Shown: positions 2,673 through 21,438 of the stretch, piece after piece | Position numbering within the stretch: the stretch's first letter is position 1 | Layout: each line of letters starts with the position of its first letter | Assembly (NCBI GenBank): GCA_024704765.1 | Contig: JAKMXF010000335.1 | Span: 124,001-188,000, forward strand | Length of the DNA stretch: 64,000 nucleotides | Origin: Oopsacas minuta | Taxonomy: Eukaryota > Animalia > Porifera | Direction: 5' to 3' | Notes under the pieces: model-generated | Told to the model about the DNA's origin: nothing | Database searches by the model: none | The model's input: the letters and a program-made list of their open reading frames with translations, nothing else | Position numbers and translations under genes: made by a program

Positions 2673-3520
2673 TGGGAATAGTCTAAACTAAAATTCCAAA
2701 CCAAATTCAGCAATAATTATAATTAATTAGAAAAATGAACACAATATGATGTTGAGTATAGTGTAATATTAGTAGGGGGACAATTTTTATGTCTTATATG
2801 AAGCTCGAGGTACCAAATAAATTCTTAAAAAAACGGATACAATTACTGATTTTCCAAAAAATAAACACTCTTGGACAAAACATGAAAAACTGGACATAAA
2901 ATTGGACATCTTAAATAATGAGTTTCTGTCTGTAGTTCTGCCTGTTATGTAAGAGTAACAATTATCGATATATGATTTTAGACTATTCCGTTTGTAATTC
3001 TTCCAGTATTTACCTTGGCTAATGTATCAAAGTATATTTTTCTGGTGCTATTCGCTTGCTAGATCGTTTCACGAAGTAAGTTACGTAAAATAATATATAT
3101 ATATCGGTAATTGTTACTAATTATTCACGATAGCCAGTTTTATGTCCAGTTTTCAATGTTTTGTCTAAGAAAGCCCAATAGTTTATTTTTTGGGAAAATC
3201 AGTTTGGTAAATTCTAGAAATTGTGTAACGGTCTAGCAAGCGAATCGCGCCAGCAGAATATAGATATGCCGGTGTATTTGCCAATGTGAAATACACTGAA
3301 AGTTGCCAAGTTCTGGGAAGCTGAAGCCAAAAGACAATCAATTTATTTTACCGATTCACTTAGTGAAGATAGTATTATGGGTATAGAATAATTACGGTTG
3401 AATTTTTAGTGAGCGCTATGGCTTGAGACCTCAAAATATGACATTTGTCTCGAAAGCGTGAGGATTGACATACTTGTTTGTCCTTGAGGTCAATATTAAA
3501 TACTTTATCCGTTTATAGCA
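2673..3520. promoter_or_regulatory. Divergent (head-to-head) intergenic region of DGLUCY and MCMBP, containing inverted repeats
   Basis: 848 bp between two divergent start codons. Inverted-repeat arms: 2845-2919/3120-3203, 2954-2973/3099-3118 and 3042-3072/3223-3253. Confidence 0.6.
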
Positions 3521-5017
3521 ATGGCTACAGACAAATGTAATTTCACGGAGAATACACTACTCTCCAATCCTATCCAAACTCTCCATTCCCTTGCTGATAC
3601 CAACACAGATATAGAATCTGTATTGAACAGCTACCAACGACTTATATCTCCATATACCAGTCGTATACCACTTCTAAACACATCAACTGATTATATGAAT
3701 AAACTTGTATACATACGTGGTATGATACAGAATATATCTGACCCAATACTCTACTCGTCAGCTGTTACACTGAAGCATAATACTACCTCAGAAACACGTA
3801 CTATCTATGTCATGTTCCTAGATAATTACACAGCACCTGATGGATGGAATATTCTAGAAACATCTGATATCAACCGAGCGAAACACGCAAGTGAATCTCT
3901 CCTCTTTCAATGTGTACCAGTACCAAATGAAACTGAATGGTGCAAACTTGAATGGTTGAAACAACAAAACGATTCCTCCACACAATTAAAACCATTACAA
4001 GTAATGGGATATACGAATCTATCCGCGATACTACTCAATAACGAATATCTATTATATGGTGTTATAATCGGAAATGAATCTACACAAACCCTACACTGTC
4101 TCTTTCATAAGCAAGTAACCATGGATACTCCATTACAACTGAGTAAATTCAATAACACGAAACCGTTGTTATTGAAAATACGTGAAAAACTATTATCACA
4201 ACTTTTGTTCTGTGTTTCTGGTGATAAACTGGCCGCGGAGTATATGCTATACAATCTCATATCGCGAAATTATGCACGCTGTGACGTCACACAACTTGGT
4301 AAATTTACACTTAACCTTATTCACTCATCACCAAACACTTCTCAACTAATATCCTATTTATATCCGAAGCTCTTACAACGGTTTTTATATCTCCCGCTCT
4401 CTCTTTCTTATCTCAATGAAAAACAGTTTCTTCCTAAAAAAGATTACACTAGTGAACACTTGATAACCGGATGTCTACAGCTAGTAGATTCTACGTTTGT
4501 ATTGATTGATGAGACTAGAATGGAGAATGGACGTTTGACTGCTTCAGGGGTAGCAGCACTTGCTGCCTTAGCTGAGCTCATCAATGGTCAATGTGTGTAT
4601 TATGATTTTACGTATCATAGACTGCCGTTCAATGTAGATGCGCCGATTCTAGTTGTAACTGAAGGTAACAAATCTTTGCTCCCTTCTAGCACTATTCTGC
4701 CTCTTATACCGTCAGATGACGTCATCACACGGCCTGAGTTATCTACAAGTGACCTTGAAGAATTGAGATTGTATATTACATCGGTTCGGACCATGGATTA
4801 CACACTTGATGTAGAGCTACAAGATAAAGTACAGGAGGATTGGGTTGATATGAGGAAGGAGGACAAGGAATTGACTGCTGACGATTTAACTAGACTTCTG
4901 ACAGCTGCGAGGTATTTGAGTATATCACGGGGAGATGGTAGCCTTATGAAGGAAACATGGATTGAGATTAATCAGTTAGAACGAGAGAGGAGAGCTAGGT
5001 TAAATTCTATGAAGTAA
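3521..5017 (+). CDS. MCMBP: Mini-chromosome maintenance complex-binding protein, intronless
   Basis: 498-aa ORF with recalled MCMBP motifs GDKLAAEYMLYNLIS, LGKFTLNL, PKKDYTSEHLITGCLQL, LIDETRMENGRL, YYDFTYH and W..MRKED...TADDL..LL..AR. Confidence 0.9.
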   Translation: MATDKCNFTENTLLSNPIQTLHSLADTNTDIESVLNSYQRLISPYTSRIPLLNTSTDYMNKLVYIRGMIQNISDPILYSSAVTLKHNTTSETRTIYVMFLDNYTAPDGWNILETSDINRAKHASESLLFQCVPVPNETEWCKLEWLKQQNDSSTQLKPLQVMGYTNLSAILLNNEYLLYGVIIGNESTQTLHCLFHKQVTMDTPLQLSKFNNTKPLLLKIREKLLSQLLFCVSGDKLAAEYMLYNLISRNYARCDVTQLGKFTLNLIHSSPNTSQLISYLYPKLLQRFLYLPLSLSYLNEKQFLPKKDYTSEHLITGCLQLVDSTFVLIDETRMENGRLTASGVAALAALAELINGQCVYYDFTYHRLPFNVDAPILVVTEGNKSLLPSSTILPLIPSDDVITRPELSTSDLEELRLYITSVRTMDYTLDVELQDKVQEDWVDMRKEDKELTADDLTRLLTAARYLSISRGDGSLMKETWIEINQLERERRARLNSMK

Positions 5018-5501
5018 ATTATTGTTAGTTTATTTGTTCTACTTAGAATTTTCGAAATTATTTGTGATTCTATTTGGCTTGCAATGAAAATCCTTATTTA
5101 TTTCCTTCTATATCGATTGTGAATCTCAGTATATTAAGTGTAGAATTTCGAGAATTCCATGTATTATTACGTATATGGGAACCTATATTTCACCATTCTT
5201 AGGTATTGTTTTGTATATATTGAAGCCAATAATGAAATAACCAAAATTACGTATATTCACTTACTTTTATAAAAATTAAAAATCACAGTCATGTTGATAT
5301 TATCGTAATTTCTTGTTGTTAACAATCTTTATGATCCAAGAAACGATTCTGATAGGATTTGTATAATGTTTATTTCGCTTATTATCAAGCCTTTGCATTA
5401 TGAACATAATTTTTGTCCCTGAATTTTCATTATAAGCAAACCTGACTGTACATCTCTATTATATATTACTAAATATTGCCAAAATTAGAAACTATTATAA
5501 G

Positions 5502-7380
5502 ATGGAATCTACAGCAGATCATCCCTACCAAGAAATGCTAGATCTTCTCAATGAACAATTCAATAGAAACTCATCAGGTATGGCAGTTATCAGTGCTAAC
5601 AGTTCAATACATACCTACTCTGAGCTACAGGGTAATGCAGGTAAAATACGTGAACTTTTATTGCACATTGGTGTTGCTAGGCAACATGTTATTGGTATTT
5701 GTATTGAACAGAATTTTGATTATATATCAGCTGTTACCGGTGTGATGTTACACGGCAGTATATTCTTGAATTTAGACCAGTATATGAACCGGAACATTCT
5801 CACGAAATTGATTTCGGCACAGCCACCAGATGTACTAATTATCGACCAATATTTCCCTATAGAAATACTATCTGAAGTAGAAATTAGCTTCCCAATTATT
5901 TTCATTGAATCAATATTGTATGACTCAATTATTTCGGCGCCTAAACTTGTGATTAACACATCATCCAGTGAGTTTGATCGTGACGTCATGTACTTGGTAT
6001 ATACATCAGGTTCTACTGGTGGTTCAAATTGTGTTATGGGTAGTTACACTGCGCTTTTAAACAGATTCTGTTGGGAATGGCAACAGTTTCCCTTTTCTCC
6101 AGGTGACCTGCTTTGTTGCCAAACCTCCCCTGCTTTCACTGATTTCTTATGGACCTCCTTGGGTGGTTTACTTGTTGGTACACCCACTATTATCGTGCCA
6201 AAACCTCTTTACATGCGTATATCTCGTTTCATAGACATCTTATCGTCCCATTCAGTTAGCCATTTAGTGCTTGTTCCTAGTATTTTGAAGAAAATTAATA
6301 AAATCCTTGGTTCATCAGGTAAGCCATTGCCCTCTTTGAAATTCCTCGTTTCTACTGGTGAGATTCTATACGAATTTATTGCGAATGAATTCCTGAACTT
6401 TGTACCTAACTGTACTCTACTCAATTTCTACGGTTCAACTGAAGTGACTTCTGACGTCACATTCTATGTAGTACATTCAGATTGTATTAGTACAGCTGAT
6501 GAACATCAAAAGGTATCAATAGGAAGAGCAATAACAGGTGTAACATGTCATATTATTGATGATAAGTCTGATTGCGTTAAGGAGCCTTATGTAGTAGGAG
6601 AGCTAGTTGTAACTGGAGATTGTCTGTCACATGGTTATTATAAGAATCCTGAATTGACGAAACGTAAGTTTTGTCCTTTGTTCCTCTCACCGAGTGAGGG
6701 TGCTGTTGAAGGGCTCAGGACTGGGGATTTAGCGTCATGGCTGCCCAACGGTGATCTGGAGTTTGTAGGAAGGTTAGATGATCAGGTTAAGATATCAGGG
6801 TCACGATGTGATTTGAAAGAAATTGAGATTGTCATTAATAAAATAGCGTTCATAGATCGTGTTGTTGTGCGTGCGGTTAATTCACCCAAACAGGATCCAA
6901 CTTTAGTTGCATATGTTCAATTAGACCGCATTTCTACCCGATCAGTACCAAATGATCCCCCCTTCTGGAAAGATACGAACAGACAGAAACAAATTCATTC
7001 TTTAGTAGCTAAAACACTTCCCCCGTATATGACACCAACTATTTATATATTCGTTAAGGAATTTCAATTGTTGAATTCAGGCAAAGTTGATTCAAAATCT
7101 TTACCAGATCCTATGCTAAAGAATTGGGAAGTTGAAGCTACCACTTGTACACGTATTGATAATGACGTCATCGAATTTGTTAAAGGTTTATTTGCGAAAC
7201 ATTTATACTTAGAAATATCGGAGATTACTTTAAAGGATAATTTCATGGAGTTGGGGGGTTATTCTCTGCTAGTTATGTCGTTATTTGAGGATGTTGAAGC
7301 GAAGTATAATGTGTGTATGCCTGTGTTTGAATTTATAGAGGATTCGACTGTACAGAATTTGTGTGAATTTATACAAACAA
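5502..7380 (+). other. NRPS module 1: starter adenylation domain (Ebony/beta-alanine type) + carrier T1
   Basis: YTSGSTG (about 6000), AFTDFLW (6132), NFYGSTEVTSDV (6423), RTGD, GRLDDQVKISG and SGKVD. T1 motif LGGYS has its Ser at 7263-7265. No upstream C domain. Confidence 0.85.
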
Positions 7381-10300
7381 ACATGAAATGTCAACAACAA
7401 CAACAACAACAACAACATCAGGAAATGAATAATCAATTAACACTTGTATTGCCAGAAAATTTGCCGGAAAAAATACCATTTTCATTCGCTCAAAAGGAAT
7501 TATACTATTTACACGAGGCTGATAAGTCTAAATCTACATATAATGAATTCGTTGCAGTAGAAATAGAAGGATTAATAGAAGTACCATTGCTACAAACTGC
7601 TATTAACGATATAATTACTTCTCGTATGATTCTACGTACTACTTTCCATCTTGAAAAACAGGAATTTTACCAAAAAATACACACCGATTTGAATTATAAA
7701 TTACAAATATTACAAACATCCAACGCTCAATTGGACCAAGATATCATCAGGAATTTACAGCATGAATTCACCCTCGATCAATTACCTTTATTTCAATTCA
7801 CACTTTTCATATTATGCGATGCATCACGTCCAAAGAGTTTCTCCAAGCGTATAAAAGGTAAAATGATATTACTTCTCTCTTTACATCATCTCTTAGTTGA
7901 TGGACTGTCCCTATATAAAATACTGTTAGAGCTATTTACAATATACAACACATACTTAGACACATCAGCCAAACTCCCAGGGCAAAATCCACCTCAATAC
8001 ATTAGCTTTGTGTTATTAGAACGGTCAGATTGTCATCAGAAAGTATTCAAATCACAGTTAGAATATTGGCGTACACAGCTACACGCCATGGATATGTTAC
8101 ATATAAGATCTGATATGGAAGGGAGTTCTAAATTCGGTCCTGCTGGACAATTTATCTGTGGGATAAGTCTGGACACGAAACGGAAACTTACTGACGTCGC
8201 TCTCGCTCATAACACTTCTCTATTCACCACTCTAATCGCGGCATTCGCGTTCCTACTCTCAAAATACGCACAAGACCAAGATGACGTTACAATAGCCACA
8301 CCAATGAGCCTACGTCCTCATATACCTCAAGGAATGGAGCTGATAGGACCCTTAATTAACGTAGTATTAATCAGGACTAAATTCGGAATATTAAAACCTT
8401 TAACACAACACTCTTTCTCAGATTTATTAACCAAAATGCATGAAACAGTTAAACAAGCAATGCAGAACTCCCTTGTACCATTAGAACATGTAGCCAATAG
8501 TTTACGAATTGATACCCCAAATAATTCGCCGTTTGAAGATTTGTTACAGGCTCTGTTCGTATTTCATGAACACAGTAAGGTTCTTAAGCTAATTAGTAGT
8601 AATAATGATTATTCTATCAAGGAATATGGAGTATATCCTGAATTGAATATGCAAGCTAAAAGTAATATTGTAATGTCTATTGATATCGTAGAGGAAGGCT
8701 TACAGGCGAGATTAGCTTATCGTACTTCTCTGTTTAGTAAGAGTTTTGCTCGACAATTCTGCCAAGATTATGTACAGCTTCTACAATTCATTTCAAATCG
8801 TCCTACTTCTATATTATCCAGATTTTCTCTACTTTCCAACCAGGAGTATAAGAATATTATTTCGATTTGTTCTACTCCGAATTTACCAATAACTACTACA
8901 TCAATTCCTCAAATATTCTATAAATGGGTTCAAGATACACCCAATAACATTGCCCTGGAAATAGAGGATCGATTATACACATATTCACACCTTTACGAGT
9001 TAATTACACTCATTGTACAATCTCTTACAGAACCTCCCCATCAACATGGTTGTGTCATTGGAATTTGTATGCGGCAGTCTGTTAACCTCGTAGCTAGCAT
9101 CCTCGCGGCTTTATTCGCAGGTTTTGGCTATGTATATTTAGACCCAGATCTCCCAAAAGGTAGATTAACCTACATACAACAAGATGCTAACATTTCTACT
9201 GTACTATTAGACTCCAGCATTGAATTAAGCTTGATAACTTCTAACCAAATAATCAACATAGATATTATACTGAACAGTGAATTTAATGCTGAGTATAATT
9301 GTCCTATGTCTGGTAACGAAATCTGCTATATATTATACACATCAGGTAGTACAGGTAGGCCTAAAGGAGTAATAGTTGGTCAGATTAACGTGATAACAAG
9401 ATGCTGCTTAACTCCTGAACTAATTGGGCCGCCAGCAGCTAGATATTGCCAGTTCTCGACATTCAGTTTTGATATATACGCGTATGAGTTTTATTGTGCG
9501 TTGCTTAACGGTGCAACTCTATGTATATTCGAGCGAGTCAAATACTTAGCTCAACTCGATCTATTCACTTCTCTTCTCCACCGTCAATACATTGACTGTA
9601 TGATGCTTGCTCCACCATTATGTGACGTCATATCTAAAAACTATCCACGTGCATTTTCCTCACTATACTCCCTCATGGTTTCAGGTGATATCCTACAACC
9701 TATCGTATCGAATAGGATATTAACCCAAGGGGCACCGAAAAACTTCTATAATCTCCATGGAATAACTGAAGTTACTGTAGTAGATAGTATTTATCGATTG
9801 GATGATTTGTTCTACAGTGATATTCCTATAGGCAGACCACTGACTAATAATTCTATGTTTGTTGTAGATAAACATATGAATTTGTTACCGAAAGGGATTG
9901 TTGGTGAGATATTAGTTGGAGGGGGAACAGTCGCATTGGGGTATTTAAATAATTCTGAAAAGACTAAGGATAAATTTGTTACTTTTCGTTTCAGTCAGGA
10001 TTCGACTACGAGATTATTCAAATCAGGTGATTTGGGATATTTGGATTTTTCGGATAGATTCAGGTTTATTGGTAGAAGTGATTGGCAGATAAAACTACGT
10101 GGACAGAGGCTGGAATTAGGAGAAATTGAGCGTGTAGCACTTGAGTATCCAGGTGTTAATGAATTTGCTGCTGTATGTAGAATAGAAGGTAATATACCAG
10201 TTTCTATCATAGGATTCTGTTCTACAAATATTGTGAATAATAATGCGCTAACACAAGAACTAAATTTACATTTGAGAGATACACTAGCTCCCTATATGAT

Positions 10301-13300
10301 CCCTAGTGAGATTTATTTCTTGAATGAAATGCCTTATGGTACTACAGGGAAAATTGACCGTCAAAAGTTAATGAAATTGGTTGAAGAAGTGGAAATATCT
10401 AGCGAGAAAGTACCCAGCAAAAACGCCGTTACTTCGACAAATATTGATATTTTTGCAACCTTAAAGACAATTTTTACACAATATTTTCCCGAAATTGAAA
10501 TATCGATAAATTCAGATTTCTTCAATATTGGAGGTAATTCTATAACTGCTTTACAACTTGTGTCACAGATTAACTCAGAATTACAATTATCAATTTCTCT
10601 ACGTGAATTCTTTCAGCACTCAACCGTTGCTAAGCTGGCCAAGTTTATTACTGATAAATATAATTTTGTGGTTCAAGTCGAGAATGAAAACTACAGCGAA
10701 AATATACGATCTGACTTGTCAATGAATGAAATTTCAAAACGACTTACGAAGAAGTTTCCTAATCTTTCGAATTCTAACTTAGAAACTGAATTACTTAATA
10801 CAGAAATTTCCAGCAAGATTATTGAAGGAATTAACACGCTTTTTTGCTTGAAACTACTCAGTAAAGACTTGCGAAATATACTTACATTTGATAATCTCTG
10901 TTCTTTGATTGTAGAACAACTCAATTTTCAAGAAATTCCTTCAGAAAATCCAGAGGTTTATCCACTAGCCTCGACGCAGCGACAATTCGCATTAGCATAT
11001 GTCTTAAACCAATCAGAATCCGCATACCACATTCCATTGTGTATCTATAGCAACCAACTAGAATGGGATATTGTAACAGAGTTTTTCAATAGTTTTATAC
11101 AGAATCACAGTATATTACGTACTGTATACACATTATCTACTGGATTCTCACAAAAACTAATCTCTAATCCAATTTTCCCTTTTCAAATATTGAAATTCAC
11201 TTTACCACCCGAATACATTGAAAATCCATTAGAATATAATCAACTTAAAAACCTTATTAAATCTGAGGTAAATTCGCCTCTTGACATACAGAATTCTATC
11301 CCTCTAAGAGCAACATTTGTGGATATAAATACAGAAAATTCTCCTGTTAAAAAGTCCCTAATTATTCTAATTCTCCATCATATTGCAGCTGATGGTTGGT
11401 CTGTGAATCTTTTATTAGAAGAATTCCAAAATTTCATCAAAACTTACCCAAAATACAAGCTGAAAAATACGAATTTCTTACAATTAACTTCAAACGATGA
11501 CACTTCATATATAGAGTATTGGAAAAATAATTTATCAAAGTTTATTTGTAACGAATTGAAATCCTTTATGCTTCTATCTAACCGTTCGAATTCTACATTA
11601 GAAAAGCCCGATATATACAAGTATATTGTAGAAATCGATATAGCCAAGAAAATACAGAAAACAAGTCAAATATGTGGTGTTACTCCGTTTATAACATTTT
11701 TGTCCGCTTTTGTTTATTTGTTTACTTTTCTATATGAACCGTCATTACAAATTGTTGTCCTTACACCTGTATCAACACGATCAACTTTAGTTGATAAACA
11801 ATATTTTGGACCAAGCGTTAACCTTCTTCCAATAGCTATAGACCTAGAAAGCAAGGACCTAGCTAGAGAATTCTCATTCAATGATTTGACTAAATTCATT
11901 CAAAATATATTTCATACCGCTTTAGAAAATTCACCAATTACATATGAGGAAATTCACCCATTTTTAAACAAGAGTTCCTCTAACAACACAAAAGTACCTG
12001 TGGTATTCAGTTATGATTCGAATCAGCTACAAACTTCACTTGACCTTGGGAAATATGGAAAAGCACAAGTCTTACCTGCATTTGATTATCTACCGACACT
12101 TCTACATGATATCTTAATAGAAGTTAATTACACTGGTGTACTAATTGAGCAAACATTGACTATAAGTCAAGCTGGAATACAACCAGAAAAATCAAAGAAT
12201 ATTCTCACACAGTATAATATATTGTTGGAATCGGTTTGTGATTCGTTCGACACTCCCCTTTATAAACTCACAGCTCTCCCTGATGTGTATGCAAAGGCTC
12301 TGACAGGTGCCAAATGCCCATCTGAGTATATCAATATTGTCATTCTAGTATACAAAATTTGTATGGAAAATCCTGATGATATTGCATTCGAATTTGACAA
12401 TGAACATTTAACATACAAACAATTCTTCGCGGAATGTTATACATATGCTATTGACCTACGTAAGTCACTTCCCAACCCTTCAAATACTATTATAGCGATT
12501 ATAATGGATCTTTCTATTGAATTAATATTAGCCATGATTTCAGTGCTAATCATTGATTTTACTTATATTTTGATTGATCCAATACTCCCTATAAATCGCA
12601 TACAAGCAATGCTGGAATTTACTGAGACAATTGCGATTATAACTACAAACAAATACAAAACTTTTTGTGAAGAAATCAACTCTAAATCTCGATTCATTTC
12701 CGTTTTAGACAGGGAAACGTTAACATGCATTGATGTACCATACAGTCATGATTTTCATTTGACGAATGAAACTGCCTATGTCATGTCTACTTCCGGTTCA
12801 ACAGGTGAACCGAGATACGTCACAATACCACATTCCTCAATCCTATCTCGTATCCATGTAAAATCCCTCCCATTCTACTCACCTACCCAAACAGTATTAA
12901 TCTGCTCAAGTCTCTCATTCGATATTTTACCATTACAAATATATGGATCGATTTTCAGTGCATCGAAAGGTGTAATTATCCATCAAAATTGTCTGGGAAT
13001 TAATATAGATAAACTCAAACCAACTGTAATAGAAAAAAATATTAATCATATGACATTACCCACTCCAGTTCTTCACCTGGTTATTGAGATAATGCCTGAG
13101 ATATTTGAACATGTGAAATATATAGATTTTGGTGGAGATGTCGCTAGCCCTGATATTTTATGTAAGCTCCAAAAAATGTATCCCAAACTGCTTTTAACTA
13201 ATTCTTATGGTCCCACAGAAGCAACTATAGTTTGTTCAAGTTCAATTCTAACTCTGCAAGATTGTCTCAAACCTATTTTAACGATTGGCAGTGCTGTACC

Positions 13301-16300
13301 TAATACAGATCTGTTGATTGTAGATACATATATGCGTAGTGTTCCATTTGGTATACCTGGAGAATTGTTGATAACTGGTGGGGTTATGTCCGGGTATCTT
13401 CATAGGCCAAATGATGAGCGATTGGTTTCAATAGAAAACGCATTAGGTAATGTTAATGTGTATTTTCGTACAGGCGATAAAGTTCAGCAGAGAGAGGATG
13501 GGAAATTGGAGTTTTTGGGTAGAAATGATTTTCAAGTTAAATTGGATGGACAACGTGTTGAGCTTAGTGAGATAGAACATGCTCTTATGAAGCATAAAGA
13601 TGTACAACTAGCTATTGTGTTTGTGAAAAAACGCGAAAAATCGAATGTTAAAATACTGCTCGCTTGTATTCTTTGTGAAAATGTCATCACTAGGGAGTCT
13701 ATGGAAATTCATGCTAAGAAATATTTGACTACGGTTATGGTGCCTTCCCAATTTTATTTTTTCAAAACATTTCCACTTTCAATAAATGGCAAAGTTGATA
13801 GAACAAAACTTTTCGAGAAAATTCAATTTGAAAAAGATTCCAAAAAGCCTGAAAGCATTCAAACTACTAATTTTGTGAGTCAAAATTTATTAGAAGAAAT
13901 TTGTCAATGTTGGAAGCAAGTTCTTGGTTTGGATGAAATACCATTGACACAATCATTTCACACGCTAGGAGGTACATCTCTCTTATTAGTACAATTACAT
14001 TATAAACTACAGCAAAAATTCGAAGTTAATCTAAGCCTACCTGAAATATTAACAAACAACACTGTATGGCTACAATCTAACTGGATAGCTAGTAAATCTC
14101 GTGATGACGTCACGGAGGTCCCCATGGATAAAACAGAATTAATTTTACCGAGGGAAGTAACAGAGAATGCTAGATATCCTCAATTAGCTGTTATTGGTAT
14201 GGCTTGTAGATTTCCTATGAGTGAGGATAAAGAATCGTTTCATGATACTCTCTTACAGGGGAAAGATTGTATAGACATGCAACAAGCTGGTGAGTAATTA
14301 TTATATTATAGTATACAATACAGTCAAACGAATTCCTAGTCCAATACAAATGAACCTCCACAAACGAAGAATTTGGTAGAATCGGGGAAACAGCATTTAT
14401 CTGCTTCTCTGGCACCCCGTTTATGGAGGTTACACTGTAGTTATAAATAGAATGTCTGTGCAAAATGAATTTAGAAATACAAGTTTTTGTGCTTTAGTTT
14501 CTACTGATATTTGTTCAAAATTCTATTATTAACGAAGTTCTACTGTATCTTACAATTGCCCCGAACCATTAATTACCATTCTTAAACTCATAATTATATA
14601 CTTACTATTACAAATTAATAATAATATCATTAGAAGATGGCTATATTGCAGCAGGAGGTTGTCTATCAAATCCAGAGCTATTTGATGCTGATTACTTTGA
14701 CATTACTCGGTTTGATGCTTGTCTTATGGATCCTCAATACAGACTGCTTCTAGAGCTAGCAGTAGATGTTATAAGAGATGCTGCTATATCACTGGAGAAG
14801 GAGAAAGTTGGAGTTTTTATTGGTTAGCTAATATGAATATTCTCTGATTAATATATATGATAAATTTACGATAATTGTTTTCAACGGCTATCACGCTCGT
14901 AATTGATTAGTTTAGTGCCTCTTTTAACCGTTATCTCTTATCAACATTTTGATCCTATCCGTTAAATTCATGTGTTTGGCCGTCTCTTCATTAAACAATA
15001 TACAGGCAACTCCCGAAATACCGGTTAATATCGAAGCAGATCGAAGTCTATACACATATGGAACCAAACAGTCAAAAACACAAATTTAATCGGGTTATAT
15101 CGAAGTTATGATCTCGGTCCCTTGAGATATATGTATGTAATTTAGGTTGTGCTACTAACACCTATCTATCAGCATCAGGAGTAGATCTATCCTCTTACCA
15201 CTACGATCCAGCTGTATCCTTCCATGTGGGTAGAGTACTGTCAGAGGAATCAGCTGCTAATTTTATATCATATCACCTCAACTTAACAGGACCTTCCTTA
15301 CTAGTTAAGACTACTTGTGTATCATCTCTTACTGCAATGCATCTAGCTGCACACTCACTACACACAGGAGAGTGTACTGCAGCTATAGTGGGTGGTGTTG
15401 ATATATCATTTCCACAGATTAGTACTGTTAGAATACAGCAGGATATGATATTCTCTCCAACAGGTAGGGGCAAAACATAATTGCTTAGTTTAGGCATACT
15501 AAACTTGGCAATTATGTTTTGGCAAGTGACGTTATAGACAAATTTATTGTATGTTTATACACCAAAAATAGCAATTAGGTGACGTACTACTATAGACTCT
15601 TGATATCGAATATATAATTGCCAGATAATCTGGCTCAGCTGTTCCCATCCATATACCCCTTGGGCCTTGGTGGCCCACATATGACAGCAGGGGATCCACA
15701 GGATCTAAAATTTATATTGCACTTATGTAAGGGGGTCGACAAAATGTGTTTAAATTAGTATAGGGGTCCGATGGTTGGAACCGCTGATCTAGCCAAAATC
15801 TCATTCCTGTAGGTCACTGCAAGTCATTCGATGATACAGCAGATGGTCTCGTGTCCGGTAACGGTATAGGATTACAAGTAATAACACTCCTACATAATGC
15901 ACTATCTAACGGCTATCCAATATACTGTAAGGTAACTGCTAGCTCTATGAATAACGATGGTAATAGCAAAGACACGTATTTCTCTCCTAGTCTATACAAT
16001 CTAACTGACTGTATAAAACACTGTATTAACCTAGACACAGAGGGGTATATAGCTTCAATAGAAGCTCATGGAGCTGGTACAATGGTAGGAGATCAGATTG
16101 AATTAGAAGCACTTCATCGTGCTTATTCTAAAAATAGTAACAGTGAAATTCATATTAATTTAGGATCTGTTAAATCTAATATTGGTCATCTCGGGTATGC
16201 TTCTGGTGCTGCTGCTTTGTGTAAGTCAATTTTACAGTTGGAAAAAGGCGTTTTATATCCGAGTCTGCATTTCAGCGATTGGAATGGGAGTTATATAAAG

Positions 16301-19300
16301 AATCATGGAAATATTCCGTTTCGCGTGGCTTCTAAAGTTGAACCATGGACTGGGAGGAGGAGATCAGCTGTTAACGGTATGGGACAGGGTGGTACCAATG
16401 TGCATATTATCCTAGAGGAACATATACATACACCTTATATACCTCGTGACGTAGTTCGTTCAGATAATGGTTTTATTTGTCCTATATCTGCTCATAGTGA
16501 TGTTGTATTGAAATGCGTATGTAGGGAGTTGATGGGATTAATTGAGAGACGGAGTAACGTGGGATTACCCAGTTTAATATCATCTTTATATAACACAACT
16601 CGTAATCTTTCTTTTAGAAAATGTTTTGTTTCACCAAATCAATTCGATCTTTTAAGCCAACTCAAACAATGGGATTCAACGCAACAGATTATGGCGCATT
16701 CCAAAGACCCTAGCAACCTGGTTCTAATTTTTGCCGGGCAAGGCGCGCATTTTCCTAACATGGGACTTGGCTTGTATTTAGACTCACAAATATTTAGGTC
16801 ACATTTTGATAATGCCGTTTCTATTTGTCGTTCTGAGTTAAAATTCGATTTACTCAATTTATTATTTTCAGCGAATCCCAATACAAATCCTACACATCTT
16901 CAAGTTTATACAGTTTGTTTACAAGTTTGTTTGTATCGTCTTATGACGTCAATAGATATTGACCCAGTTGTCCTTATAGGACATAGTATAGGGGAAATAT
17001 CTGTAGCTACTTGTTGTAATGTATTTACATTGGAAGATGCTATACAGCTTGTGTACTACAGGAGCAGGTTAATGCTTGGGGCTACTGATATGAAATATGG
17101 AATGTTGGCCGTCAAAACCGATCAAATTTCCGCGAGGAAATTAGCTACAGAGTCTGGCCTCTCTATCGCTGCGTTTAACAGCCCAAATCAAACAGTATTA
17201 TCCGGTGAGATGGTCATAATATCTTCACTATGCGAGCAATTAACAAAACAATCAATTCAGTATAAAGTGTTATCAGTTCCTACAGCTTATCATTCGAAGC
17301 TATTAACAAGCATATTACCACAGTATAGAAATCTGTTGAAGAAATATCCACCACATGCCCCATCCAAACAATACATTTCTACTGTAACAGGTAATTGGGT
17401 AGATATCAATACTGTATCTACTGTTTCTTATTGGGAAGACCAATTGGTCAATTCTGTATTATTCTACCCTGCATTAGAATGCGCCGCACAAATAGCGAAT
17501 CCAGTTTTCTTAGAAATCGGCCCTGGAAGCAGATTATCTTCAATTATTAGGAATCATATGCTAGGATATCATGTATTTCCACCACTTATAACTTCTAATG
17601 ATAATTACCTTGAAACTTTTAAGGAAATTTGGGAGTTTGGGTTCGAATTAAAATGGAGCTTATTTGGATTTTTTGAAGATTCCACACCGAAAATTCGTAT
17701 TTTTCCTTTTCCGTTTGAAAGAAAGAAATTCTCCGTACAAGATATTAAAAAAATTCTTAAACCGAACGTTGAAATTTTACAGCCAAAACAGACATTCACA
17801 TTGCCACTACTAACTAATACAATTCCAGAATTTTCATTGAAAACTATCGATCAACAGCTCTCTGCTCCAATTGTACAACTAATAAAGAATGTATCTTCTA
17901 AAGTTATTGAAGGAGAGCACAAAAACTTTAATATTACTGTTGGATTGGGTTTACCTGGTGGTAGCACTGTATTCGAATCTTTGACAAATTTTCCGACGTC
18001 TAGTACTACAATATATCCTATTGGCTGTCTATCCAGTATATTTATATACATTCTTTTCAATATCTTCCTGACAACTGGTAGAGTCACGCATAGCACTAAG
18101 CTTATCGAATTGCTACCGTTAGAATATTCAATTTCTGAGCCGAAATCTTCTATAACTCTTTTCCATCTCGCAACACACTCATCAGGCCTAGCTTTCCTTC
18201 CTTCACGACTTACATGGGAAGTTTCTGATCTCTCCAATTACTCGCTTTCAGAGCTATTTACAGATTTCGTAGAATGTGAGCTACAGTCATCGCCAGGTGA
18301 TCAGTACAGCTATTCTGTATTTGGGTCTGCGCTACTTACGCATGCACTAACTGCTATTACAGAGCAATCCTATGAGGAATTATTACAATCTTATATACTA
18401 CAGCCTTTAGAAATGAAATCTACGTTTATTAGTGCATCTATTCGGACGCTAAAGTTCAAACATTATCAGGGGCATGACGTCAAAGGTTCTAAGGTCCCTA
18501 AATGGAACTGTGGAGAAGCTTTTAAGTTTGCTGATGGGGTTCATAGTACATTAAAAGATCTCATAAGTTTAACCCAGTATTTGACTGGAATTGCAACTTG
18601 CGATGTTCCATTGAAAGGCGTATTGGATTTTATGATAAAATCCGATCAGAATTCGTATAGTTTTCTATCTGGCATAACTAACGGGAGTTCAGTTTGGCTA
18701 GCTGTTGATTTGAAATGGAAAACATCGATTATTCTGGCTTGCAATACAAGTCTTGATAATTGTAAAAAGTTAGCTAAATTGACTGAATTTACTTTCAACA
18801 CATTTCCTGGACTATACACTAGTTTGTATTCAAGTAATATTATAGGTGGTAGCCAATCAATTCCTATGTCCTTTGGTGAAAAACAGATACTTGCATTAGG
18901 TGGTGGATCTATGCCAGCAATTAATGCTCCGATAAATGCTCTCGCTATGTGCGATAGAAGTCAAGAAATTGAGTGTCCTGCTCCCGGCAATAACTATCTT
19001 GTTAATGGAGGAATAGGGGAGATACTGCCGAAAAATGAAGTATCAGATGTTGAAAAAGTTATTTTAGAGGCACTGTCTAATCTTGTTGGAGGTGACGTCA
19101 TAAAAAGGCAAGATGTATTAAATTTGGATTTCACACATTTGGGCCTTGATTCTCTTTTAGCCATTTCTCTGGCAGAGCAAATTTCTAATGTTTTTAACAG
19201 AAAAATATCTTTTCATCTTCTTTCTGAATACACAACAATACATGAGCTTTCTCAGTTTATACAGGCAGATTGGGAAAATCTTGCAAAACACATTCCAAAC

Positions 19301-20676
19301 GTCCATAGCAACACACATGATGCAGACACTAATCACATACTATCTATTCCTAATACAAATATATACGAATTATTTCCAGATAGTACATTTCCATTGGTTA
19401 TAGAACCTGCTAGTGAACAGTACAATGGCATCGTTAATCTTAAGAGAATATTCTCGAAGCATTCTGAAACATTCCAATCTCTGTTGCTAGGCAGCGGTGC
19501 TCTGTTATTCAGGAATTTCAAACTTGATACAGCTGAGCATTTCTCAGAATTTACGAATGAGTTGAGTGGAGTTTTTGGTCCATCTCTTGAATATTTAGAT
19601 GGTATTTCACCTAGAACACGAGTGCTAGAAAAGATATACACTTCTACTGAGTACCCGTCTAAGTACGATATGTCTCCACATAATGAGATGTCCTATTCCC
19701 CTAATCCACCTTCTCATATAATGTTCTTTTGTCTAAATCCTCCTAACAACGATTGTGGAGGACAAACACCTTTGATGAGTTCTAGAAATATTCTGGACAA
19801 GATTCCAGAGAAATTGTTGAAAGATTGGAAAACTCGGAGTTTGAAATATTATTGGAATCTGTCTAGTCGTGGTAAAGGAGCTGGTAAGAGTTGGCAAGAT
19901 ACATATGGGACTGAGGATAGGCGGTGTGTGGAGAAGTTTCTCGCTGAACAAGGGTTTGAGTTCAAATGGAAAGGAAGTACACTTCGAACTTCTAGGTAGA
20001 TTTAATACAGAGATAGCATTTAGTATCATAGAGTACAGTCAATTCCCGTTATATCGAAGCTCAAGGGTCCCGCGATAATTATTTCGATATAACCGTGAAA
20101 TGTATGTCTCTTTTACGGTTGGGGACCATATTTGTACAATTTAGACTTGGATATAACAGGAGTTGACTGTATGTCCCATCACAATATGAATCTCTATCCA
20201 TTGTATGTATTAACTAGAGTAATTTTAATTTATAGCCAATTTATGGGATTGATAAATTAAATGTATTATCCCGTGTATCAAGTTAACAGTTTTCTACTAA
20301 ACAAAATATCCATACAATGATTGATTACTTATTTAGAACTGCAACAATAACACGATGCCACCCGATCACTAAAGAAGAGGTTTGGTTCAACCACGCTCTC
20401 CTATTCCACCCCTCTGAACTACCCGACACAGTCAGCACTTCCCTCTCTTCATTCCCTAAAGATGAATACCCCAAGCACTGTACTTATGGAAACGGAGAGG
20501 AAATATCAGATTCAGATATAGCTCAGGTTAAATCTGTCTGTTTATCAAATTTGGTAATGTTCGATTGGCAGAAAGGTGATGTATTGTTGGTTGATAATTT
20601 CTTAGTTGCTCATGCAAGGAAAAAATTTTCTGGTGAGAGAAAGATTCTTGTCTCCATGTTCCGTTGTCAAGATTGA
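5502..20676 (+). CDS. Spliced hybrid NRPS-PKS megasynthase, about 4,605 aa: A-T-C-A-T-(T*)-C-A-T-KS-AT-betaLac-ACP-TauD. Exons 5502-14289, 14634-14822, 15146-15463, 15813-19995, 20337-20676
   Basis: Four GT-AG introns (donors GTGAGT, GTTAGC, GTAGGG, GTAGAT; phases 1,1,1,2) join the exons in frame. 8788+189+318+4183+340 = 13,818 nt = 4,606 codons including the stop. Splicing restores a continuous KS (DPQYRLLLE, TTCVSS, HCKSFDDTADG, EAHG, KSNIGH) and a continuous TauD domain. Confidence 0.9.
7392..7415 (+). repeat. (CAA)8 microsatellite encoding poly-Q in the T1-C1 linker
   Basis: Eight perfect CAA codons; protein reads MKCQQQQQQQQHQEM. Confidence 0.95.
7470..10660 (+). other. NRPS module 2: C1-A2-T2
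   Basis: C1 active site HHLLVDG (7884-7904). A2 motifs YTSGSTGRPKGV (9336), FKSGDLG, GRSDWQIKLRGQRLELGEIE and TGKIDR. T2 motif IGGNS has its Ser at 10539-10541. Confidence 0.88.
10955..14095 (+). other. NRPS module 3: C2-A3-T3
   Basis: C2 active site HHIAADG (11376-11396). A3 motifs STSGSTGEPR, NSYGPTEAT, FRTGD, GRNDFQVKLDGQRVELSEIE and NGKVDR. T3 motif LGGTS has its Ser at 13977-13979. Confidence 0.88.
14321..14437. mobile_element. Degenerate TA-flanked MITE in NRPS-PKS intron 1
   Basis: TA|CAGT...ACTG|TA ends. AACCTCCACAAACG (14353-14366) is inverted relative to CGTTTATGGAGGTT (14418-14431). A similar right end lies at 28060-28079. Confidence 0.55.
14634..14822 (+). CDS. Exon 2 of the NRPS-PKS (KS domain); absent from the ORF track
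   Basis: TAG acceptor at 14631-14633 and G|GTTAG donor at 14823. Translates (E)DGYIAAGGCLSNPELFDADYFDITRFDACLMDPQYRLLLELAVDVIRDAAISLEKEKVGVFI(G), containing the KS motifs FDAxFF and MDPQxRLLLE. Confidence 0.92.
17870..18810 (+). other. Serine beta-lactamase/AmpC-fold domain embedded in the PKS module; catalytic motifs altered
   Basis: YPIGCLSSIF aligns with F.IGSxxK.F; LATHSSGL with LLTHTSGL; PGDQYSYSV with PG..Y.YSN; YEELLQSYILQPLEMKST and ADGVHSTLKDL with AGGL.ST..DL. Confidence 0.8.
19040..19280 (+). other. PKS acyl carrier protein (ACP)
   Basis: FTHLGLDSLLAISL (Ser at 19151-19153) followed by ...HLLSEYTTIHELSQFI. Confidence 0.88.
19370..20676 (+). other. C-terminal TauD/SyrP-like Fe(II)/2-oxoglutarate dioxygenase domain (split by intron 19996-20336)
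   Basis: GALLFRNF, IYTSTEYP...PHNEMSY (HxE at 19679-19687), FFC..P...GGQTP, WFNHA and WQKGDVLLVDNFLVAHAR (distal His at 20611-20613). Confidence 0.88.
20036..20169. mobile_element. Tc1/mariner(pogo)-type MITE, family A, in NRPS-PKS intron 4
   Basis: TIRs CAGTCAATTCCCGTTATATC / CAGTCAACTCCTGTTATATC (18/20) with TA on both sides. Related copies at about 15003-15130, 28573-28735, 30767-30944 and 50020-50170. Confidence 0.85.
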
Positions 20677-20829
20677 ATTGAATTGAGTCGCTTTTATTTG
20701 TTACAGAGTTTATTTTTAGATTTTAGTTGTTTGCATGCTTGAAACATTTCTGACTAATTCGTTTGGTTTAGCTTTTTTAGCAGAATATATTTCATCTACC
20801 AACTTTGTAACTGATATTTGAACCAAGTA

Positions 20830-20999
20830 CAGTAGAACTCGGATAAGACGTACCCCCTCGAGAAACAGAAATTAGTACGTCTTAACCGAGTGTACGTCTT
20901 ATCCGAATATGTTTGCATTACAAATAGTGATGACTGATATTTTGGGATATAAGAAATAGTACGTCTTAACCGAGTGTACGTCTTATCCGAGTTCTACTG
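20830..20999. mobile_element. Tc1/mariner(pogo)-type MITE, family B, with perfect 24-bp TIRs
   Basis: TA|CAGTAGAACTCGGATAAGACGTAC ... GTACGTCTTATCCGAGTTCTACTG|TA; internal 34-bp direct repeat at 20873-20906 and 20957-20990. Fragments at about 51203-51281 and 63627-63652. Confidence 0.92.
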
Positions 21000-21438
21000 T
21001 ACAAGGTTTCTTACCAGCAATCTAGATTGCAACCTTGAATGCTGTAAGATTTTCACAGTTTTTCAGGGAGTAGAGTCTATTTTGTATTGGAAATATTTTG
21101 TATTGGAAATATTTCCTATAATAGCAAGTTCGCGATATAGCAAGGAAACTCGTGCAAAATACAACATGCTATTATAGTTGCTATAGGCGAAAATCACTGA
21201 ATGTGGCAACTCAAGTTTGCTCATTAGAAATTATTGCAAAATAATATCTATTGTTATTTTATTAGAATTTATATGCTAAAATTTCGGAACACATAACCCA
21301 CATAATTTCCAAATAATACCTACTTATAATGTACAATTATCTAACAAGCTTACCGGATAATAGCATTTGTACCCATTTTACAAGCCAGTTTTGTAAAAAC
21401 CTATATTCATTTCAACCTCAATTAGATTTGATATAACC

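Follow-up and report, generated by a model that had tools for sequence, protein, structure and literature searches.

A spliced and transcribed hybrid NRPS-PKS megasynthase gene in the glass sponge Oopsacas minuta, with relatives in bdelloid rotifers

The window analyzed here is a 64,000-nucleotide stretch of Oopsacas minuta DNA, and all features located below lie on its + strand. Five exons spanning 5502-20676 join in frame to encode a megasynthase of 4,605 amino acids; the coding length of 13,818 nt corresponds to 4,605 codons and a single terminal stop. The neighbors are animal genes: D-glutamate cyclase, MCMBP (last large exon at 3521-5017; Pfam MCM_bind, E = 6e-100), and the ArfGAP gene GIT (21439-23562; Pfam ArfGap, GIT_SHD, Ank, and GIT1_C). 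Re-measurement places the megasynthase 484 bp downstream of MCMBP and 762 bp upstream of GIT, the same values as in the first-pass annotation, whose model of five in-frame exons with GT-AG introns was also reproduced.

The spliced protein consists of 13 domains in the order A-T-C-A-T-C-A-T-KS-AT-betaLac-ACP-TauD. Exon 1 (5502-14289, residues 1-2929) is a single open reading frame that begins at the first ATG following a stop codon, and its N terminus is identical to that of GenBank model P0241. Searched against Pfam in overlapping pieces, it matches AMP-binding three times, Condensation twice, and PP-binding three times, followed by the start of the KS, and thus reads A1-T1-C1-A2-T2-linker-C2-A3-T3 plus the first ∼35 KS residues. 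The adenylation domains are A1 (5556-7085, residues 19-528; Pfam AMP-binding and AMP-binding_C), A2 (8919-10352, residues 1140-1617), and A3 (12363-13793, residues 2288-2764). Their codes, read by motif anchors, are TDWVVTFSDK (beta-alanine-like), DIYMMSLVVK, and DILTIFSIVK, respectively. The P-loop of A1 is atypical (TSGSTGGSNC), as is that of A3. The carrier domains T1 (7176-7373), T2 (10488-10649), and T3 (13893-14066) hold their serines at Ser588 (7263-7265, GGYS motif), Ser1680 (GGNS motif), and Ser2826, and the condensation domains C1 (7470-8858, profile positions 4-455) and C2 (10953-12311) carry HHLLVDG at residue 795 and HHIAADG at residue 1959. T2 and C2 are connected by a linker of about 100 residues (10650-10952) without a family match. 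The first-pass annotation had placed an additional carrier domain here ("T*", residues 1717-1817), which we rejected, as no carrier-protein model from Pfam or NCBIfam matches this segment.

The KS and its C-terminal extension (14184-16585; Pfam ketoacyl-synt, Ketoacyl-synt_C, and KAsynt_C_assoc) extend over exons 1-4 and contain three introns. Exon 2 (14634-14822) and exon 3 (15146-15463, with the active-site cysteine at 15316-15318) encode KS pieces. Exon 4 (15813-19995) encodes the C-terminal half of the KS (KS_C and KAsynt_C_assoc), the AT (16724-17554; Acyl_transf_1), a beta-lactamase-fold domain of the class C/S12-like type (17855-18847; Pfam PF00144, E = 4e-19, and PDB alignments), the ACP (19118-19261; Pfam PP-binding, GLDS motif with Ser4212), and the N-terminal part of a TauD-type Fe(II)/2-oxoglutarate dioxygenase (19448-19995; Pfam TauD), which is completed, together with the stop codon, by exon 5 (20337-20676). 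The AT has GHSIGE (Ser3490) and TAYH motifs, and its PDB matches are AT domains of modular PKSs. The TauD facial triad (His4388-x-Glu4390 and His4585) and Arg4587 align with PDB 1Y0Z (E = 5e-30), the closest solved structure, which is that of At3g21360, a clavaminate-synthase-like protein from a plant. Direct reading of the residues, including the KS triad Cys3050, His3184, and His3224, bore out the earlier statement that both HHxxxDG motifs, the four carrier serines, the KS triad, and the AT GHSxG are intact.

The four introns, all GT..AG and 323-349 nt in size, are located at 14290-14633 (344 nt), 14823-15145 (323 nt), 15464-15812 (349 nt), and 19996-20336 (341 nt). Intron 1 ends in a tandem NAGNAG acceptor and contains a MITE-like piece. 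A high-copy MITE occupies 20034-20171 of intron 4; it has 26-nt terminal inverted repeats and a DNA word depth of about 6,000 versus about 208.

GenBank already holds the gene as a single 4,604-residue protein (P0241, "Hybrid NRPS/type I PKS" [Oopsacas minuta], 100% identical), one residue apart from the five-exon model, with the NAGNAG acceptor of intron 1 taken 3 nt downstream. The expectation that gene callers would fragment the gene was therefore not borne out; it is split only by prokaryote-style callers on the contigs of relatives. In the genome paper on Geodia barretti, an antiSMASH table lists Oopsacas minuta with a single "NRPS,T1PKS", and a literature search found no published description of the hybrid gene. 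Beyond the GenBank entry and the antiSMASH count, the orthologs, the family-wide domain order, the conserved A1 code, and the Cys-x-x-Ser motif described below are new here.

Transcription was assessed by comparing the runs X1-X4 over 14600-20599. Whereas X1-X3 represent colinear DNA of even depth, the public run X4 contains RNA-like contigs that skip exactly introns 2, 3, and 4 (323, 349, and 341 nt), with GT..AG joins at 14821/15145, 15461/15811, and 19992/20334. An additional loose end at 14633 bears the last 30 nt of exon 1, indicating that intron 1 is also spliced; the four junctions predicted by the first-pass annotation are thereby accounted for. The word depth in X4 is 340-600 in exons (>330 beside intron 3) and 5.7 in intron 3. 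The codon frequencies of the megasynthase correlate with those of the flanking host genes (r = 0.92), and its GC3 is 0.285, compared with 0.31-0.35 in these genes. The megasynthase is a genuine, spliced, and expressed nuclear gene of Oopsacas minuta. Its assignment to the host chromosome rather than a symbiont was confirmed by the introns, the flanking animal genes, and the host-like codon usage.

Orthologs with 56-72% identity (P0001-P0005 and P0242-P0246) are found in five related genomes, on contigs 0.3-1.7 Mb long. Similarity and synteny suggest that these genomes probably belong to other glass sponges. All four intron positions and exon boundaries are common to Oopsacas minuta and the five genomes, and GIT lies downstream of the megasynthase in two of the five (L001 and L003). 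The 13.8-kb coding sequence is free of stops and frameshifts in all six species, and the orthologs evolve under purifying selection (dN/dS = 0.13 for L001 versus L003).

An exhaustive profile search retrieved further proteins of 4,300-4,900 amino acids with the same tail, which are colinear with the sponge protein over its full length at 25-37% identity. Carriers include the bdelloid rotifers Didymodactylos carnosus, Rotaria socialis, Rotaria sp., and Adineta vaga; the remaining members sit among eukaryotic genes, and at locus L002 a neighboring gene has GT-AG introns. The family falls on one side of a branch relative to the sampled bacteria in both the KS-AT tree (SH-aLRT 98) and the TauD tree (96), and none of the best 80 TauD-bearing loci is a bacterial one with the fused tail. 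The nearest bacterial TauD relatives (33-41% identity) come from NRPS-rich loci of Pseudomonas, Sorangium, Nostoc, and Acidobacteria. Judged by domain order and per-domain trees, the sponge gene belongs to a family that is also present in bdelloid rotifers. The domain order that had been called unusual is confirmed, but it recurs in rotifers and other eukaryotes and is not unique to Oopsacas minuta.

The A1 code follows the pattern xDWxV[ST]xxDK throughout the family. In this code, an Asp has moved to position 236 and another occupies position 331, which we take to be the beta-alanine pattern; to our knowledge, the A2 and A3 codes have no assigned specificity. In a language-model feature search, A1-T1 was nearest to bacterial A-T didomains. 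Suring et al. (2023) described a rotifer NRPS with three A domains (one Ebony-like and two others), and their tree clusters the first A domain with Ebony; this NRPS is probably a member of the same family. Together, the family-wide code and this clustering make a beta-alanyl starter on A1 plausible. Of the beta-alanyl peptide-polyketide proposed in the first-pass annotation, the starter is thus backed by the A1 code, whereas the product itself remains a prediction.

From its domain content, the protein would operate as an NRPS of three modules joined to a single PKS module. Once the protein has been phosphopantetheinylated by a host PPTase, A1 would load beta-alanine on T1, and C1/A2/T2 and C2/A3/T3 would add two alpha-amino acids. 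The AT would load the ACP with a malonyl unit; the KS would then condense the tripeptidyl thioester with this malonyl-ACP to a beta-keto (3-oxoacyl) tripeptidyl-S-ACP, the keto group being expected because KR, DH, and ER domains are absent. The TauD-type domain may hydroxylate the carrier-bound residue or ketide in a SyrP-like manner. Finally, the conserved-Cys beta-lactamase-fold domain might off-load the chain through an acyl-enzyme, followed by cyclization (to a macrolactam or tetramate-type lactam) or hydrolysis; it would then be the cis-acting counterpart of PBP-type thioesterases or LovD-type acyltransferases. The proposal of a self-contained single-gene pathway is unproven: the 4,605-residue protein has no recognizable release domain (TE, R, or terminal C), and a search for a PPTase in the Oopsacas minuta genome found none.

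Because TE, R, and terminal C domains are absent, the beta-lactamase-fold domain is the best candidate for off-loading. In the PDB it aligns best with class C beta-lactamases and D-peptidases; its AlphaFold model is poor (pLDDT 51). Both the serine and the lysine of Ser-x-x-Lys are gone; the motif reads Cys3837-Leu-Ser-Ser (Cys-x-x-Ser). Furthermore, Tyr3932-Ser-Val replaces Tyr-x-Asn, and the third motif (KTG/HxG) is lost. There is a substantial chance, if somewhat short of even, that the domain is instead a structural spacer in place of a reductive loop or pseudo-KR. Release would then be due to the TauD domain or a separate enzyme, or would occur spontaneously, either by attack of an amide nitrogen on the beta-keto thioester to yield an N-acyl tetramate or by hydrolysis and subsequent decarboxylation. 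The three missing canonical elements fit such a role, as does the position of the domain before rather than after the ACP. In the rotifer members, moreover, the Cys and Tyr are gone while the other assembly-line parts and the TauD domain are retained, which leaves two options: a different release in rotifers or a structural role of the domain in all members. However, Cys3837, Tyr3932, HxSG, and W-x-C-G...ADG are invariant in the six sponges and kept in six members at just 25-30% identity (P0361, P0363, P0371, P0364, P0362, and P0366), and P0376 keeps a C-x-x-K. Such conservation is more than expected for a mere spacer.

As for its origin, the gene was probably acquired before the sponges with orthologs diverged, from an intron-less ancestor within the same megasynthase family, with the introns gained later within the sponge lineage. 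A family ancestral to animals or wider eukaryotes, inherited vertically by glass sponges and rotifers without horizontal transfer into sponges and lost almost everywhere else, would agree with the eukaryotic setting of all members with readable context, with their monophyly relative to sampled bacteria in two domains, and with the 0/80 result for bacterial fused tails. We nevertheless regard vertical descent as unlikely. The distribution is very patchy (no further named animals among 1.84 billion representatives searched), and the genes of the rotifers and those of P0361 and P0363 have no introns or are interrupted elsewhere, sharing no intron position with the sponges. A microbial eukaryote of 62% GC also has the gene, pointing to a possible donor pool, and massive horizontal gene acquisition is known in bdelloids (PMC11258130).

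The absence of a release domain, the atypical A1 and A3 P-loops, and the degenerate beta-lactamase motifs could also suggest a decaying, horizontally acquired gene that is transcribed but yields no product. Such a relic is very improbable given the uninterrupted reading frame in six species, the low dN/dS, the intact core catalytic residues of the C, T, KS, AT, ACP, and TauD domains, and the high RNA contig depth. Mis-assembled symbiont DNA is effectively refuted: although most NRPS/PKS genes in sponge assemblies are of microbial origin, and Steffen et al. did not decide where such clusters come from, this gene has four spliceosomal introns that are removed in RNA, close same-strand host genes, host-like composition and codon usage, a gene order kept in two other genomes on long contigs, and closest bacterial proteins that are just 24-34% identical.

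Taken as a whole, an expressed nuclear glass-sponge gene with the proposed assembly-line mechanism and an origin by acquisition is the best explanation, to which we assign a probability of roughly 0.78. The gene lies in the sponge's own chromosome and is spliced and transcribed; related sponges have conserved copies, and other members of its family occur in rotifers. The animal itself, rather than a symbiont, is therefore the probable producer of a small beta-alanyl peptide-polyketide.

PBP-type thioesterases (SurE-like) and LovD-type acyltransferases share the PF00144 fold with the sponge domain. They take an acyl chain off a carrier protein for release or transfer in pathways without a classical TE, but are stand-alone enzymes with Ser-x-x-Lys plus Tyr that act in trans. 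The sponge domain is part of the megasynthase, between AT and ACP, and carries Cys-x-x-Ser; the likeness is one of fold, and its best PDB matches are other enzymes. SyrP-like and integrated TauD-type beta-hydroxylases act in bacterial NRPS pathways. The sponge TauD domain has in common with SyrP-like enzymes the PF02668 Fe(II)/2-oxoglutarate fold family, the His-x-Glu...His triad, and the NRPS association, but it is fused straight after a PKS ACP at the extreme C terminus and groups with the eukaryotic family in a separate clade.

Among animal systems, the nemamide machinery incorporates beta-alanine. The nemamide synthetases PKS-1/NRPS-1 of Caenorhabditis elegans (PMC8363725) are likewise animal-encoded hybrid polyketide-nonribosomal peptide enzymes, but comprise two proteins in PKS-to-NRPS order with many more modules and a TE, and lack beta-lactamase-fold and TauD domains; they were absent from every homology search with the sponge protein. 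The beta-alanyl-amine synthases Ebony and Sm-NRPS resemble the sponge A1 in the putative beta-alanine pattern and through the published rotifer tree. Ebony, however, consists of one A-T module followed by a C-terminal domain that selects the amine, whereas the sponge A1-T1 feeds canonical C domains. The closest counterparts are the rotifer megasynthases, for which we found no published function. CAF0936322.1 of Didymodactylos carnosus (4,384 residues) and CAM4864166.1 of Rotaria socialis (4,417 residues) have the complete sponge domain order, and the Adineta vaga record UJR07171.1 (1,630 residues) covers the KS-to-TauD part. The two full-length proteins fall into the same clade as the sponge gene in the KS-AT and TauD trees, the leading A domain of each follows the A1 code pattern, and they probably correspond to the rotifer NRPS of Suring et al. 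(2023). The rotifer copies differ in their A2 and A3 codes, in the loss of the Cys and Tyr, and in being intron-less or interrupted at another site, and their identity to the sponge protein is 25-45% per domain.

The NRPS-PKS gene of Oopsacas minuta (megasynthase; window 5502–20676, forward strand) is composed of five exons (5502–14289, 14634–14822, 15146–15463, 15813–19995, and 20337–20676). When joined, these give 13,818 nt, which correspond to 4,605 codons followed by a single terminal stop and bear out the in-frame splice proposed in the first-pass annotation. The four introns are all of the GT..AG type and measure 344, 323, 349, and 341 nt.

Domains were assigned by running Pfam on the exons, with exon 1 submitted as overlapping 600-aa pieces. 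The NRPS part comprises A1 (aa 19–528), T1 (aa 559–624), C1 (aa 657–1119), A2 (aa 1140–1617), T2 (aa 1663–1716), C2 (from aa 1818), A3 (aa 2288–2764), and T3 (aa 2798–2855), i.e. three AMP-binding domains accompanied by AMP-binding_C, three PP-binding domains bearing the GGxS serine, and two Condensation domains that contain HHxxxDG. It is followed by a KS domain (from aa 2895) that extends across exons 1–4, an AT domain, a β-lactamase-fold domain (PF00144, here betaLac), an ACP, and finally a TauD domain that is divided by intron 4. All domains named in the order first proposed, A-T-C-A-T-(T*)-C-A-T-KS-AT-betaLac-ACP-TauD, were thus recovered, with the exception of T*. This ∼100-aa stretch between T2 and C2 (aa 1717–1817) matches no family, and its reading as a carrier domain was rejected, because no Pfam or NCBIfam model matches it.

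The catalytic residues that had been described as intact can all be read directly from the protein. Besides the two HHxxxDG motifs, these are the four carrier serines (Ser588, Ser1680, Ser2826, and Ser4212, the last in the GLDS motif of the ACP), the KS triad (Cys3050, His3184, and His3224), and the AT motif GHSIGE with Ser3490. The KS-AT region matches the KS-AT structures of modular PKSs in the PDB. Across the 4,605 aa, Pfam gave no match to Thioesterase, NAD_binding_4, or a third Condensation domain, which leaves the enzyme without a TE, R, or terminal C domain, and the PKS module contains no reductive domains.

Four public sequencing runs from one sample (X1–X4) contain this stretch and were mapped over window 14600–20599, which lies inside the gene. 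Over this region, X1–X3 remain colinear with the genomic sequence across the introns, with flat, even depth, and are therefore DNA runs. X4 behaves as RNA. Its contigs jump from 14821 to 15145, from 15461 to 15811, and from 19992 to 20334, all with GT..AG borders and in exact match to introns 2–4. A further X4 contig that begins its match at 14633 carries the final 30 nt of exon 1 ahead of this position, indicating that intron 1 is also removed. The word depth of X4 is 340–600 in exons versus 5.7 in intron 3. Looking for spliced transcripts across the four junctions, as had been suggested, therefore yielded GT..AG joints for three of them and a loose end for the remaining one, in agreement with the gene model.

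A GenBank protein of 4,604 aa on a 272,140-bp contig, found with exon 1 and 100% identical, is entitled [quoted passage not shown] The expectation that gene callers would fragment the gene is not upheld by this entry, in which the gene is already annotated; as a single 4,604-aa protein, it demonstrates that the eukaryotic gene caller produced one model and did not split the gene. Intron 1 ends in a tandem NAGNAG acceptor (window 14632–14637, TTAGAAG). Splicing to the distal AG, as in the GenBank model, removes Glu2930, whereas the X4 RNA contig is joined at the proximal AG, as is the first-pass model; the one-residue difference between the two proteins thus results from the use of an AG three bases downstream.

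The megasynthase is embedded among animal genes. MCMBP lies 484 bp upstream and the ArfGAP gene GIT 762 bp downstream, both on the same strand and at the distances reported before. Farther upstream, MCMBP is adjoined by a single-exon gene for a D-glutamate cyclase (DGLUCY-like; window 879–2672, reverse strand). Genes with few or no introns are common in this part of the window, whereas the region from 24 to 64 kb is AT-richer with few long ORFs. The composition of the megasynthase matches that of its host neighbors (GC 0.36, GC3 0.285, codon-frequency r = 0.92).

Orthologs with 56–72% protein identity are found in five related genomes, available as long HiFi contigs in ENA under ERZ25069837, ERZ25071281, ERZ25766962, and ERZ20067936, plus the assembly that gave protein P0004, and four of the ortholog loci (L001, L003, L004, and L005) were compared in detail. 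GIT lies downstream of the megasynthase in L001 and L003, as in Oopsacas, whereas the downstream neighbors in L004 and L005 differ. The four loci agree in the residue position of every one of the four exon boundaries but vary in intron length, and dN/dS over exon 4 is 0.13 for the closest ortholog pair. The intron-containing gene therefore predates the split of these species and has been maintained by selection. The GIT proteins of the related genomes are 68–76% identical to Oopsacas GIT and far from those of any named animal, so that their sequences mark these genomes as probably those of other glass sponges. The removal of the introns in RNA, the linkage to MCMBP, GIT, and D-glutamate cyclase, and the retention of GIT in two relatives place the gene in the host chromosome and not in a symbiont. 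The core of the first-pass annotation, a host-encoded, spliced NRPS-PKS, was right.

Copies of one element as the source of all four introns (323–349 nt) were considered and rejected, as the introns align with only 51% column identity. The introns have in common MITE-like pieces with TACAGT terminal repeats, which explain part of their similar lengths. Window 20034–20171 in intron 4 is occupied by a MITE-like element whose terminal inverted repeats are 26 nt long and start with TACAGT, and related pieces are located at 14304–14460 (intron 1) and 15051–15117 (intron 2). In the DNA runs, the intron 4 element has a word depth of ∼6,000 compared with ∼208 in its flanks, and many contigs end there, which identifies it as a high-copy dispersed repeat. 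Between the megasynthase and GIT, window 20829–21000 holds a second small element; its 25-nt ends, ACAGTAGAACTCGGATAAGACGTAC, are perfectly inverted, and it contains direct repeats of 37 nt. Eleven copies of the palindrome TGACGTCA are present in window 1802–19100 (0.48 expected), always in coding exons of D-glutamate cyclase, MCMBP, or the megasynthase (eight sites in the latter). Nine of the 10 phaseable coding sites read xxT-GAC-GTC-Axx (Asp-Val), and the orthologous loci contain 2–5 copies per 24 kb.

Beyond the sponge orthologs, ordinary searches return only bacterial PKS/NRPS proteins with 24–34% identity and partial coverage. With the betaLac-ACP-TauD tail as query, an exhaustive profile search retrieved a small set of proteins with the same tail and a length of 4,300–4,900 aa (one of 5,786 aa). 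In local blastp alignments, these run colinear with their sponge counterpart all the way from A1 to TauD. Named members of this family are from the bdelloid rotifers Didymodactylos carnosus, Rotaria socialis, Rotaria sp. Silwood2, and Adineta vaga. Other members sit among eukaryotic genes (WD40, FF/WW, RasGAP, RCC1, NOX, and Nop56/58), several of them with short introns. In maximum-likelihood trees, the family falls on one side of a branch that separates it from 45 bacterial KS-AT sequences (SH-aLRT 98) and from 80 bacterial TauD sequences (SH-aLRT 96). Full-length colinearity and trees together indicate that the architecture belongs to the family as a whole instead of having been invented in sponges, and the first-pass annotation needs correcting to the effect that rotifers and other eukaryotes share it. 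Rotifer and other non-sponge members are intron-less or interrupted at other sites; the sponge introns are thus secondary.

For the patchy distribution of the family, we favor transfers among eukaryotes over the alternative of ancient inheritance with many losses. A GC-rich locus (L002, 1–9688; ENA ERZ27263109, 62% GC; protein P0012) encodes ...A-T-KS-AT-betaLac-ACP-TauD as one ORF that the contig end cuts off within an A domain. Its first reading as a bacterial relative, based on GC content, was rejected: the downstream class I aminotransferase gene contains GT-AG introns of ∼66 nt, one of which divides the motif ADE|VY, and these introns, together with the truncation of the ORF by the contig end, mark L002 as eukaryotic. 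It is possible that L002 represents a microbial member or donor lineage of the family. A bacterial donor with the same tail was dismissed, because GTDB species genomes gave only stand-alone or differently fused TauD genes: no bacterial locus with the fused tail was among the best 80 TauD-bearing loci or the long TauD-ending proteins of the profile search, and the Planctomycetota TauDs that are nearest in the tree lie outside any colinear synthase. In a Cellvibrionaceae MAG (L021, 9155–11898), an NRPS cluster has adjacent stand-alone genes for a canonical PF00144 β-lactamase-family protein and a TauD, so bacteria also combine both activities with an NRPS, there in unfused form.

The substrates of the A domains were approached through their specificity codes, which were read via motif anchors. 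The A1 code is TDWVVTFSDK, with the Asp displaced to position 236 and another Asp at 331, and the pattern xDWxV[ST]xxDK is present in every family member. We tentatively take this pattern to be the β-alanine (Ebony-type) code; β-alanine code strings were not found in the literature searched. By feature search, A1-T1 is nearest to bacterial A-T proteins. A2 (DIYMMSLVVK) and A3 (DILTIFSIVK) both keep Asp235, which suggests that they load α-amino acids. Their codes are conserved within sponges and different in other lineages, and neither was recognized as a known code. Suring et al. described a rotifer NRPS with three A domains, the first of which groups with Ebony; this protein is probably a member of the megasynthase family.

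In the PKS module, the AT domain (GHSIGE/TAYH) would load the extender unit, likely malonyl, and KS-catalyzed condensation without reduction would be expected to leave a 3-oxoacyl tripeptide on the ACP. TauD is the best-conserved part of the family (34–51% identity in local alignments to members outside sponges). Its iron triad (His4388-Asn-Glu4390...His4585) and the 2-oxoglutarate-binding Arg4587 align with 1Y0Z and 9YUT, and the simplest reading is that TauD would hydroxylate a tethered residue in-line, in analogy to SyrP-like enzymes.

The betaLac domain (PF00144, E = 4e-19) has phmmer matches to the D-peptidase 4Y7P and to class C β-lactamases. It carries Cys3837 at the nucleophile position and a Ser at the lysine position (C-L-S-S); at the Tyr-x-Asn position it reads Y-S-V, with the Tyr kept, and at the position of the third motif (KTG/HxG) it reads S-G-I, so that this motif is lost. 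With Ser-x-x-Lys, Tyr-x-Asn, and the third motif all altered, betaLac is not a canonical PF00144 member by mechanism. No variation at Cys or Tyr is seen among the sponges and six further members; C-x-x-K is found in one member, and the rotifers have lost both residues. An AlphaFold model from a 7-sequence alignment (mean pLDDT 51.5) was too poor for fold search or active-site reading. Given the lack of TE, R, and terminal C domains and the conserved Cys and Tyr, we propose that betaLac may act as a Cys-dependent off-loading or cyclizing domain; the odds between this function and a purely structural role are about even. The description of the gene as a self-contained pathway is unproven and counts among three points to correct. 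In the family member P0376 (JGI metagenome 3300047677, 4,785 aa), betaLac has the sequence G-C-L-T-K, in which Cys occupies the nucleophile position and the lysine is retained, and an additional reductase-like region precedes TauD; P0376 thus resembles an intermediate form.

Sponges serve as the prime textbook example of animals whose peptide and polyketide natural products are attributed to symbiotic bacteria. In contrast, the megasynthase is a multimodular NRPS-PKS that resides in the sponge's own chromosome, is spliced and transcribed, and is conserved in probable glass sponges. We put forward, with a probability of roughly one in four for the reading as a whole, that glass sponges and not microbes make a β-alanyl tripeptide-ketide, that they do so with a member of an old, eukaryote-specific megasynthase family common to bdelloid rotifers, and that an in-line, Cys-bearing betaLac replaces the thioesterase as a new type of release/cyclization catalyst. 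One unstudied 13-domain architecture connects hexactinellids with the very distant bdelloid rotifers and further eukaryotes, and thereby makes the spread of such genes among eukaryotes tractable to test. The Cys variant of a β-lactamase fold within a PKS module is a candidate for new off-loading chemistry. The megasynthase is thus of interest to sponge natural-product biology and to the enzymology of its two unusual tail domains, and provides a concrete target in the search for the first peptide-polyketide made by a glass sponge.

The existence of the gene is already on record, both in GenBank and as an antiSMASH count; the evidence, the family, and the mechanistic hypothesis are new. The count is from the Geodia barretti genome paper, in which antiSMASH was run on sponge assemblies; a supplementary table row reads “NRPS,T1PKS 1 Oopsacas minuta,” and the paper explicitly leaves undecided whether such clusters reflect contamination or transfer. 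Neither NRPS nor PKS is mentioned in the genome papers of Oopsacas and Aphrocallistes, Porifera or sponges appear nowhere in the text of a survey of animal NRPSs, and the bdelloid paper does not mention TauD or β-lactamase domains. In the literature searched, we found no description of the megasynthase or its architecture and no account of its host origin, expression, conservation, or relatives. The nemamide enzymes PKS-1/NRPS-1 were absent from the matches of the megasynthase homolog and profile searches, and, according to PMC8363725, they possess an architecture that differs from that of the sponge megasynthase.
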